Position numbers and translations under genes: made by a program
Notes under the pieces: model-generated
What the model saw: the letters and a program-made list of their open reading frames with translations, nothing else
Told to the model about the DNA's origin: nothing
Databases searched by the model: none
In this document: positions 22,355-27,476 of the stretch, in pieces
Layout: every line of letters starts with the position of its first letter
Numbering within the stretch: position 1 is the first letter of the stretch
Assembly (NCBI RefSeq): GCF_011386835.1
Contig: NC_088800.1
Span: forward strand, 19,344,001 to 19,408,000
Length of the DNA stretch: 64,000 nt
Direction: 5' to 3'
DNA from: Chrysemys picta bellii
Taxonomy: Eukaryota

Positions 22355-22380
22355 ATGAGCATCATCGTCGGCATCGGCGG
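22355..22380 (+). CDS. NMRK2-like: NMRK-like coding exon 1 (MSIIVGIG/G)
   Basis: gcaccATGagc start; cgg|gtgaga donor; probable acceptor cccccatag| before 22313. Confidence 0.92.
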
Positions 22381-25300: not shown

Positions 25301-27476
25301 ACGGAGGATTTTGGCCAAAACTCTTTGGCATATTATTGTTAAAGTTGCAAATAGCTTCAGGTTGACTGAAACTGCAGTTTTTATTAATAAACCACGTCTA
25401 GAAAAAATTCACTCAGTTCTAAGTACAATTTATATGCTTAACTTTTTAAAGCGGCACCTAAAATTATTGGAATTGTCATACCGTCATCAGACAGCCCATG
25501 CAACTGGGTATCCTGCTGTCAATTGCCAATCAGAAATCATAGGAAGGTGTAAAAATCTCCACTAATGCTCTTACTAATGTTGCACCTTTAGTTCTTATGC
25601 AGATCAAATAGAGTAGCTGTAAAATATACAAAAACTAGAGAATTTCTTTTTCAGACCATTGATTGAGATATTCAACCATCGGTACTTCCTTTCCATTCCA
25701 TATGAAGAATGCAAGAAAAGGAGGAGGTAGGCTTTGATGTTTTTTCTTAAATGAAGTAATCAGTAAGGTAATCTGGTAATTACTACATTTTATTTATAAA
25801 GCTTTATTTGGTTCAGGCAGCAGTAGAGGATGCTTGAGAGAGTCTTAGATTTACTGGGTTAGTCATTTAATTGCGTACTCCATGGTATCTGAGAAGTTCC
25901 TGCAAAGTTCTAGAAATATACTAGCTGGTATCAAAAGCCAATATATAACTGAAATGGGCCCCAAAGCTCAAAGGATGAGAGATGCAAAAGAACCTGTGAG
26001 GTCTGAATTGTTTGGGATATGGCTTTCCAGACAATCTCTTGACATTGTCTTCATTATTGAGTCTTCAGGATTTAAGAATCGCCTATATGAGAAGAGTTTT
26101 CTTTAATGGTAAAATTGCCAGTTAGTACTCCGCTATCTTTTCCCTTCACTCCTTTACGAGAAACTAAGCTTTTGGGCCTTGTTTACATGTGGGATTTGTC
26201 CAGATTTCAGCCACTGGTATGGCAGTATTGGTGCAAAACTCCTGTAAGAAGGTAAAGCACTCTTTGCACTAGTGGAGCTTACCCCTTCCTGAAAGCAGGT
26301 TATGCTCCACTGGTGAAAACAGCTATTTTTGGCCTACCTTTGCTAGGGACTAGCCACTTTTGAAGTTCAAAACATGAAAGTTTCTCTTCTGTTTCATGCC
26401 ATAATTTAATGCATGATGTCCAAAAGCTACAGCAATTCTTGATATGAACAAATATCGTGTAAGTAAGGTCAGTTGATATAGAGTTCTGAGAATCTTAATC
26501 TGTCATTTCTGCAACCTGCCATACCTGTCATATCACACTTCATTATTCTGTTTTGTCTTCAATCTTTTTTGCAGCCGATACATAACATATCAACTTTGAC
26601 AAAAATTCAGAGAATTTACATCAAGATAACTAGTTTTGATTTGGTGGTGGGTAAAGAGATTGCACTGTATCTAGACTTCTTACCTTGTAACAAGAAATAC
26701 TTATGTACCACTGTCTTTATAATCTCTAGTTCAAGGAACTACACTGTACCAGATCCTCCTGGATTATTTGATGGCCATGTCTGGCCCATGTATGTTAAAC
26801 ATAAGAAAATAATGGAGGATTTCGAAGTGGATGTGGGTAAGTATATTGGATGGTGGAAGCTCAAGACTAGTGTATAGGGAAGTTTGTTTCTACTGTCTGC
26901 TCTGGGAGAGGGGGTACAATTTAAATAACTTAATTCAGTGAGTAGATTTGAACCAGTGCTACTTGTGATGTATGTAAGGCAGTTAAACTTCTTTGGGATT
27001 GGTCTAGTTCCTGGCCTATGTTTTAAAAAAAAAAAAAAAACTAGAGATTTGATAGGATTGTAATTCTAGGATGTTATCAGGATGTTTTTGTCTTCATTCA
27101 GAAATGTCTCAATTGTAACTTTTAAAAATATTTTTAAGTTCAATTGGATGGAACAAAATCAAAGGAGGAGCTGTTTAATGAAGTTTATGAACAGATCCAG
27201 AACAAGATTGAGAAACTGCTGCTTATGCAGGTAAAAAACAAACATGAAGCGTACCTCACTGCAATGGCAAACTGGCTTAATGTTTCTAAAATGAACAAGA
27301 GTAACTTTTTAAATACTTCTTTCAGAAACTCAGTGATTGCTAGTTGTACTCAGTAGAAGGGGGACTACTAGTGTTTTCAGACAGGAAAACAAAGCTGTTA
27401 ATTGTGTACACTATTGTAAGTGAGCCTCTTATGTATAATGTCAAACACTGAAATTTTCTTCGTTTTACAGAGATAG
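22355..27476 (+). CDS. NMRK2-like: Nicotinamide riboside kinase, NMRK2/MIBP-like, 208 aa, 8 coding exons (whole CDS span)
   Basis: Exons 22355-22380, 22618-22708, 24045-24090, 24236-24422, 25655-25726, 26730-26836, 27139-27230 and 27471-27476 sum to 627 nt with consistent phases. Motifs: P-loop [65 protein letters not shown]. Confidence 0.95.
22618..22708 (+). CDS. NMRK2-like: NMRK-like coding exon 2 (VTNGGKTT...HQDDFFK)
   Basis: Branch-point-like ctaac, then gccctag| acceptor; aag|gtgagt donor; 91 nt. Confidence 0.95.
23015..23926 (+). mobile_element. Solo LTR (912 bp) in NMRK-like intron 2
   Basis: TGTTAGG...CCTAACA inverted termini (TG..CA); several ATTGG boxes; TATATA at about 23647; AATAAA at 23821. 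TSD only partly matching (ctcac/ctctt). Confidence 0.8.
24045..24090 (+). CDS. NMRK2-like: NMRK-like coding exon 3 ([15 protein letters not shown])
   Basis: tgtttcag| acceptor; atg|gtaagg donor; 46 nt. Confidence 0.92.
24236..24422 (+). CDS. NMRK2-like: NMRK-like coding exon 4 (LDMEAMM...EGFLLYTY)
   Basis: ttgtcttag| acceptor; cag|gtaact donor; 187 nt in phase. Confidence 0.95.
24530..25010. mobile_element. Composite repeat with tRNA-like internal units
   Basis: Degenerate units such as ggcaaggttcaattctccc and gatttgaacattggtctccc; a related element lies at 59690-60230. Confidence 0.4.
25120..25255 (-). mobile_element. MIR/CORE-like SINE remnant
   Basis: ttttatagatggaactgaggcacagagaagctaaatgacttgcc core motif. 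Confidence 0.55.
25655..25726 (+). CDS. NMRK2-like: NMRK-like coding exon 5 ([23 protein letters not shown])
   Basis: ctttttcag| acceptor; gag|gtaggc donor; 72 nt. Confidence 0.95.
26730..26836 (+). CDS. NMRK2-like: NMRK-like coding exon 6 ([21 protein letters not shown]...)
   Basis: ctctag| acceptor; gtgg|gtaagt donor; 107 nt. Confidence 0.95.
27139..27230 (+). CDS. NMRK2-like: NMRK-like coding exon 7 ([12 protein letters not shown]...LLLMQ)
   Basis: tttttaag| acceptor; cag|gtaaaa donor; 92 nt. Confidence 0.9.
27471..27476 (+). CDS. NMRK2-like: NMRK-like terminal coding exon (R-stop)
   Basis: Strong acceptor ttttcttcgttttacag| followed by AGA TAG. Confidence 0.6.
   Translation, partial: R

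Follow-up and report, generated by a model that had tools for sequence, protein, structure and literature searches.

We report an analysis of a nicotinamide riboside kinase gene in a 64,000-nucleotide stretch of the genome of the painted turtle, Chrysemys picta bellii (assembly GCF_011386835.1, contig NC_088800.1, positions 19,344,001 to 19,408,000; hereafter the window, in whose numbering coordinates are given unless otherwise stated). The gene, coding from 22355 to 27476 on the forward strand, is very probably the painted-turtle member of an old lineage, variously named NMRK2-like, mibp2 and Nrk2b, which is sister to NMRK2, predates the split between sharks and bony vertebrates, lies adjacent to SQOR, has no copy that we found in mammals, and most likely encodes an active kinase of nicotinamide riboside (NR) and nicotinic acid riboside (NaR). 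The original prediction, made from the letters of the sequence, had offered the locus as a candidate third kinase; it is not an unrecognised one, since the exact protein is already in RefSeq and the zebrafish orthologue, Nrk2b/mibp2, has been studied. Both the gene and its zebrafish counterpart are thus already known, and the locus belongs, as annotated, to an established enzyme family rather than representing a new gene or a new kind of enzyme; what the analysis changes is the place of this gene within the family.

The phylogeny proposed as a check on the original prediction was built from 87 proteins, namely 27 NMRK2-like, 40 NMRK2, 16 NMRK1 and 4 invertebrate outgroup sequences, with 205 columns after trimming. 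Two runs were made: a quick one under LG+C20, with branch support from the Shimodaira-Hasegawa-like approximate likelihood ratio test (SH-aLRT), and a full one under LG+F+G4 with 1000 ultrafast bootstraps, for which support is given as SH-aLRT/UFBoot. The topology is (NMRK1,(NMRK2,NMRK2-like)), with NMRK1 not resolved as a single clade. Support for the NMRK2-like clade is 94 in the quick run and 96.2/100 in the full run; for NMRK2, with the sharks, skate and chimaera inside it, 91 and 91.1/99; and for NMRK2 and NMRK2-like together, against NMRK1 and the outgroups, 99 and 100/100. The tree neighbours nearest to the turtle NMRK2-like protein are a softshell turtle and birds. A duplication after the split of the cartilaginous fishes is rejected by the approximately unbiased (AU) test (p=0.003, log-likelihood difference, delta lnL, 59.5), and a tree in which the shark genes are orthologues of NMRK2-like narrowly escapes rejection (p=0.052, delta lnL 32). 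The constrained trees in these tests came from fast searches; a fast unconstrained tree, serving as a yardstick, had an lnL 10.9 lower than that of the best tree and was likewise not rejected. Under either surviving tree the duplication that separated NMRK2 from NMRK2-like precedes the radiation of the jawed vertebrates.

The painted turtle also possesses an NMRK2 (XP_008167077.1, here P0469), which is encoded on a separate 17.1-Mb chromosome and groups within the NMRK2 clade. Together with the support for the NMRK2-like clade, this bears out the proposal of a third nicotinamide riboside kinase gene. The turtle NMRK2-like protein is 62% identical to the animal's own NMRK2, 58-63% to mammalian NMRK2 and 45-56% to the sampled NMRK1 proteins, and 76% and 86% identical to zebrafish mibp2 and to the ptarmigan orthologue, respectively.

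When the turtle protein was used as query in a word-index search, 1347 relatives were returned, the best 120 of them all 74-99% identical to it. These best 120 come from turtles, birds, a crocodile, tuatara, squamates, caecilians, frogs, a salamander, coelacanth, gar, bichir, sturgeon and teleosts; the tetrapod proteins are mostly named "NMRK2-like" and those of fishes "muscle-specific beta 1 integrin binding protein 2". The corresponding search with a bird NMRK2 found NMRK2 in birds, squamates, turtles, monotremes, marsupials, eutherians, amphibians, sharks, chimaera, bichir, sturgeon and teleosts. NMRK2 and NMRK2-like occur together in at least eight species (Anolis sagrei, Euleptes, Gekko, Polypterus, Conger, Megalops, Triplophysa and Scleropages). 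The NMRK2 clade takes in zebrafish nmrk2 (F1QSN9) as well as a cyprinid cluster that goes by the name "mibp" and has a Danio aesculapii protein among its members.

Two database entries met on the way deserve a remark. Antechinus flavipes has four proteins named "NMRK2-like" (P0334, P0340, P0350 and P0372), encoded on two large contigs and 95-96.5% identical to Sarcophilus NMRK2; they are products of a recent marsupial multiplication of NMRK2 and stand outside the NMRK2-like lineage. The other entry, P0415 (KAB1717091.1), is a protein of 172 amino acids (aa) from a 517-nt contig, labelled "AAA family ATPase, partial [Klebsiella pneumoniae]", that belongs to the cyprinid mibp2 cluster at 90% identity; it is almost certainly a fish sequence contaminating a bacterial assembly.

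Zebrafish Nrk2b has reportedly been under study since 2010. The protein described under that name is Q7ZUR6 (2012 PLoS Biology paper), and cluster look-up and the tree place Q7ZUR6, which is NP_942578.1, "muscle-specific beta 1 integrin binding protein 2" (mibp2), inside the NMRK2-like clade. Because Nrk2b lies within this clade by tree and synteny, it is, on that placement, an older third paralogue and not the orthologue of mammalian NRK2. Zebrafish deficient in Nrk2b have disordered laminin at the myotendinous junction and are rescued by nicotinamide adenine dinucleotide, NAD+ (2012 PLoS Biology paper; PMC6145238). A 2018 review treats Nrk2b as the NRK2 homologue and puzzles over the normal-looking NRK1/2 knockout mice (PMC6145238). 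In the literature we searched, nothing was found that describes Nrk2b or NMRK2-like as an ancient paralogue in its own right that lacks an equivalent in mammals.

The nearest relative of solved structure is human NRK1 (PDB 2qg6), to which residues 3-203 of the turtle protein align over chain residues 4-192 with an expectation value (E) of 1e-65, while the only Pfam match is to the generic P-loop domain AAA_18 (E 4.7e-9). The P-loop nucleoside-kinase fold is presumably common to both proteins. The P-loop itself, GVTNGGKTT, occupies turtle residues 9-17 and fits the family pattern Gly-Val-Thr-Asn-x-Gly-Lys-Thr. The functional residues of NRK1 are Thr12, Lys16, Asp36, Asp56, Glu98, Arg129, Arg132 and Tyr134, of which Asp36 and Glu98 are the essential carboxylates (Tempel 2007, PMC1994991). 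Their turtle equivalents are T11, K15, D35, D54, E109, R140, R143 and Y145, and all eight are invariant in 27/27 members of the clade. The aromatic stack of NRK1 consists of Tyr55 and Phe39 (PMC1994991); on the turtle side Y53 is a diagnostic position conserved in at least 90% of the NMRK2-like clade, within the clade consensus FKQYD, and F38 lies within another stretch of clade consensus, HQDDFF. The ratio of non-synonymous to synonymous substitution rates (dN/dS) is 0.045 between turtle and ptarmigan and 0.06 between turtle and gar, with dS near saturation, and 4 synonymous and 2 non-synonymous changes separate the coding sequence of Chrysemys from that of Trachemys. Selection on NMRK2-like is strongly purifying.

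The turtle protein is therefore best regarded, as far as its residues can tell, as most likely an active kinase dependent on adenosine triphosphate (ATP) that acts on NR and NaR. In the mechanism we propose, ATP-Mg would be bound by Thr11 and Lys15 of the P-loop, Asp35 would serve both to activate the 5'-OH of the ribose and to bind Mg, and Glu109 would keep a Mg-bound water in order. The 2' and 3' hydroxyls of the ribose would be held by Asp54 and Arg140, the transferred phosphate by Arg143 and Tyr145, and the pyridine ring would be stacked between Tyr53 and Tyr145. The product, nicotinamide mononucleotide (NMN) or nicotinic acid mononucleotide (NaMN), would then enter NAD+ synthesis. The substrate range of turtle NMRK2-like and the tissue of its expression we infer; by analogy with what is reported for zebrafish Nrk2b, it may have a role in muscle adhesion.

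The original prediction had remarked on a mixture of NMRK1-like and NMRK2-like traits. FKQYD and LDGTKS are common to NMRK2-like and NMRK1, NMRK2 having W and L at these places, and the motif [12 protein letters not shown] is common to the turtle protein and NMRK2. NCSV, cited as a further NMRK1-like trait, is a local variant in the turtle; the consensus of the NMRK2-like clade is NCCV. The mixture is explained by the tree, since KQYD and LDGTKS appear to have been retained from the ancestor. The cis Gln135-Pro136 of NRK1 is said to exclude uridine, and a Thr-Val pair is tied to acceptance of uridine (Tempel 2007, PMC1994991). At the position of that Gln-Pro pair the turtle protein has the NRK2-type pair, Thr146-Val147, and its ring-stacking residue is of the NRK1 type, Tyr53, where NMRK2 has Trp. 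The combination of Tyr53 with Thr146-Val147 hints at a hybrid specificity of the nucleoside pocket.

It is possible, although we would not favour it, that NMRK2-like/Nrk2b is a functionally distinct NAD+ salvage kinase, with this hybrid pocket (Tyr53; Thr-Val) and maybe a local role in muscle-matrix adhesion that was lost with the gene in mammals. If this were true, the phenotypes of zebrafish Nrk2b would have been attributed to the wrong gene in mammals, which would explain the contrast between normal NRK1/NRK2 knockout mice and affected Nrk2b-deficient fish. The correction of orthology matters: the NAD+ field uses zebrafish Nrk2b as evidence on NRK2 in muscle, and the correction affects how data from fish, chicken and reptiles are read across to mammals.

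The gene model agrees with the complete eight-exon open reading frame (ORF), with its P-loop, D35 and E109, that had been described earlier. All eight exons lie on the forward strand, the coding part within 22355-27476, all internal borders are AG/GT, and the joined ORF has 627 nt, that is 208 codons and a stop. The 208-aa product is letter-for-letter identical to XP_008163620.1 (RefSeq, "nicotinamide riboside kinase 2-like", Chrysemys picta bellii). Exon 1 lies in a GC-rich stretch (GC 0.52 across 22001-24000). The exons, including the parts of the untranslated regions (UTR) covered by a transcript contig described below, are as follows.

22112 to 22380, forward strand: exon 1, 5' UTR (from position 22112 or earlier) and the first 26 coding bases, with the ATG at 22355 and a GT donor; the transcript contig reaches 22381.
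22618 to 22708, forward strand: exon 2, the remainder of the P-loop ([10 protein letters not shown]) and the catalytic Asp35; transcript-matched.
24045 to 24090, forward strand: exon 3, FKQYD with the base-stacking Tyr53 and the ribose-binding Asp54, as assigned by comparison with NRK1; transcript-matched.
24236 to 24422, forward strand: exon 4, a variable loop and Glu109, equivalent to NRK1 Glu98; transcript-matched.
25655 to 25726, forward strand: exon 5, the beginning of the lid region (ECKKRR, including Arg140); transcript-matched.
26730 to 26836, forward strand: exon 6, [13 protein letters not shown], with Arg143, Tyr145 and the NRK2-type Thr146-Val147; transcript-matched.
27139 to 27230, forward strand: exon 7, the C-terminal helix (LDGTKS ... 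LLLMQ); transcript-matched.
27471 to 27530, forward strand: exon 8, a single Arg codon followed by the stop (27471-27476) and by 3' UTR that extends to 27530 or beyond.

The transcript evidence comes from a 934-nt public Logan contig, SRR20341026_2936 (L009), which encodes residues 23-208 of turtle NMRK2-like and aligns with 22112-22381, with every internal exon and with 27468-27530, intron sequence being absent. Because the introns are missing from this alignment, the contig represents a spliced transcript, and all seven modelled junctions are used, including the one leading to the 6-nt coding tail. Fourteen probable RNA runs from 8 studies contain 0.19-0.32 of the sampled words of 22000-27900, which is approximately the exonic share, and four untyped runs ("?") contain 0.86-0.90 of them. 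Turtle NMRK2-like is a real, expressed gene.

The sizes of the coding exons, 26/91/46/187/72/107/92/6, are identical in painted turtle, Trachemys and ptarmigan. The terminal micro-exon, consisting of one codon and the stop, is found in turtle, bird and frog, whereas gar and zebrafish stop in exon 7; the NMRK2-like proteins of Chelydra, Harpia and Sphenodon have the same C-terminal ending as that of the turtle. Since this ending recurs in other species, the single-Arg exon 8 is not an artefact, and it appears to reflect a change of the 3' gene structure on the tetrapod side. In Trachemys an isoform X1 of 223 aa (P0001) has a 16-residue tail in place of the final Arg; its gene range (L001 10001-27276) runs about 9 kb beyond the usual stop into SQOR on the opposite strand, to a point corresponding to approximately 36688 in the window. 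This isoform probably represents a minor splice variant produced by read-through.

The neighbouring genes were mapped from Trachemys scripta chromosome CM023065.1, to which the window is 94-99% identical.

12645 to 17053, reverse strand: a CDC42 small-effector-like (PBD) gene of 76 aa, upstream and head to head with NMRK2-like; mapped from Trachemys.
31964 to 45179, reverse strand: SQOR (sulfide:quinone oxidoreductase), about 450 aa, downstream and tail to tail with NMRK2-like; the Trachemys Pyr_redox_2 model mapped onto the window.

The SQOR exon at 41325-41594 (reverse strand) matches human SQOR structures with E 4e-34, so that the earlier placement of an NMRK gene beside SQOR is borne out. 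The order of a PBD gene of 75-76 aa (reverse), NMRK2-like (forward) and a Pyr_redox_2 gene of 450-452 aa (reverse) recurs in Trachemys, ptarmigan and spadefoot toad. Gar has mibp2 (forward) followed by the same oxidoreductase (reverse). The adjacency to SQOR is therefore conserved from gar to birds; within 10 kb of zebrafish mibp2 no SQOR was seen.

The surroundings of NMRK2 are different. In hummingbird, NMRK2 lies on a 5.7-Mb chromosome and adjoins a 456-aa kinase whose best match of solved structure is DAPK3 (E 1e-68, versus 4e-63 for DAPK1). The original prediction had suggested looking for a DAPK3-linked NMRK2 elsewhere in the genome. A turtle NMRK2 does exist, on the 17.1-Mb chromosome, but no DAPK3 turned up within 10 kb of it, and the linkage was seen only in hummingbird. 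The exon sizes of bird NMRK2 are 26/91/49/172/72/107/83, and exon sizes and phases are largely common to NMRK2 and NMRK2-like; this common exon plan indicates a duplication at the level of DNA rather than a retrocopy.

On established human maps the genes DAPK1/2/3, RORA/B/C and SEMA6A-D are found in matching regions of human 9q, 15q, 19p and 1q, and the paralogy of 9q21, 19p13.3 and 15q21-22 put forward in the original prediction agrees with these maps. Judging from this paralogy and from the timing of the duplication, NMRK2-like would have originated in the two rounds of whole-genome duplication (2R). Alternatively, an early jawed vertebrate could have acquired the pair by duplication of a segment or by a local duplication, and two points allow for this: the evidence obtained bears on the timing, which is before the shark/bony split, and the best 120 of the 1347 matches contain no shark NMRK2-like. 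We nevertheless consider such an origin unlikely, because the two genes reside on different chromosomes with distinct conserved neighbours (SQOR and the CDC42SE-like gene versus DAPK3), and because the DAPK, ROR and SEMA6 genes, by established human maps, occupy the matching 9q/15q/19p/1q regions.

A different question is whether the lineage has been kept for its catalysis at all. Fish members take their names from "muscle-specific beta 1 integrin binding protein", and zebrafish Nrk2b is reported at myotendinous junctions, where it affects laminin and paxillin, as might be expected if the protein were retained chiefly as a non-catalytic adaptor of integrin beta-1, as is said of the short MIBP form of NMRK2, with kinase activity secondary or lost. 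However, none of the catalytic and substrate-binding residues varies among the 27 sampled members, which range from zebrafish and gar to birds, and exogenous NAD+ rescues the zebrafish knock-down, pointing to an enzymatic product; we regard a chiefly adaptor function as improbable, and markedly so.

That the turtle gene might be a plain orthologue of mammalian NMRK2 that was relocated is suggested by names (NCBI has "NMRK2-like", and UniProt has "Nicotinamide riboside kinase 2" for several members) and by the motif and the Thr-Val pair held in common with NMRK2. This is hardly credible, since NMRK2 proper is present elsewhere in the turtle genome, since it is P0469 and not the window gene that groups with monotreme, marsupial and eutherian NMRK2, and since at least eight species have both genes; the second turtle NMRK2 and the placement in the tree together refute it. 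A recent duplication of NMRK2 confined to reptiles or sauropsids, for which one could cite the name and the proof from Antechinus that recent copies of NMRK2 can arise, has a negligible probability and is refuted by the SQOR-adjacent orthologues in frog and gar, by the further orthologues in coelacanth, bichir, sturgeon and teleosts, by an identity of just 62% to the turtle's own NMRK2 and by the clade support of 96/100. What had been named in advance as grounds for abandoning the idea of a third kinase is accordingly not what was found: the turtle gene is not the sole NMRK2 of its genome, it stands outside the NMRK2 clade of monotremes, marsupials and eutherians, and, at 62% identity to the turtle's own NMRK2, it is no recent copy.

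Several points weigh against the placement of the gene in an ancient, catalytically active lineage absent from mammals. The constraint trees from fast searches carry a penalty of about 11 lnL out of the 59 and 32 observed. The absence from mammals, which had been anticipated, stands in so far as none is among the best 120 of the 1347 matches to turtle NMRK2-like, a statement that covers annotated proteins only. Cartilaginous fishes are likewise missing from these best 120, an absence that is weaker given the AU p=0.052. The zebrafish evidence, as cited in later papers, consists of morpholino knock-down with NAD+ rescue. On the biochemical side, we know of no tetrapod member of the NMRK2-like lineage with an enzyme assay.

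The remainder of the window offers a few observations of its own. Scans for ORFs in 1-12500 and 46500-64000 gave no convincing coding exons of at least 90 aa. A CpG-rich island at 52295-53415 (GC 0.61 in 52001-54000), about 7 kb past the SQOR start codon, contains only low-complexity, overlapping ORFs on both strands; it may serve as the promoter of SQOR, which would then have a non-coding first exon, or of another gene. Within an SQOR intron, at 35192-36215 (reverse strand), ORFs of 143 and 131 aa resemble, by eye, fragments of retrotransposon ORFs. There is an apparent gap of about 8.5 kb relative to Trachemys near 46.8-55.3 kb, and a 64-nt direct repeat at 54540 and 55758; the gap may be a repeat match and not an insertion.

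Among known systems, zebrafish Nrk2b/mibp2 is the closest to the turtle gene: it belongs to the same clade, is 76% identical, has all the catalytic residues in common with it, and has first six coding exons of 26/91/49/178/72/107, compared with 26/91/46/187/72/107 in the turtle. The zebrafish protein is reported to supply NAD+ on which the organisation of laminin at the myotendinous junction depends. It differs in ending in exon 7 and in the lack of a visible SQOR within 10 kb, and the functional reports are all on the zebrafish side. NMRK2 (also NRK2, ITGB1BP3 or MIBP) is the sister paralogue (100/100) and resembles the turtle gene in its exon plan, in [12 protein letters not shown] and in the Thr-Val pair. 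In contrast to it, NMRK2 occupies a separate turtle locus, is 58-63% identical, has Trp as the stacking residue where turtle NMRK2-like has Tyr, neighbours DAPK3 in hummingbird rather than SQOR, and occurs in mammals and sharks. Human NMRK1 (2qg6, 2p0e) has in common with the turtle protein the P-loop, the counterparts of Asp36/Glu98, Asp56/Arg129 and Arg132/Tyr134, and a stacking residue of the Tyr55 type. It differs in being an outgroup to the NMRK2/NMRK2-like pair, with 45-56% identity for the sampled NMRK1 proteins, in having the cis Gln135-Pro136 where the turtle has Thr-Val, and in lacking 13 loop residues that the turtle protein carries at approximately positions 76-100.

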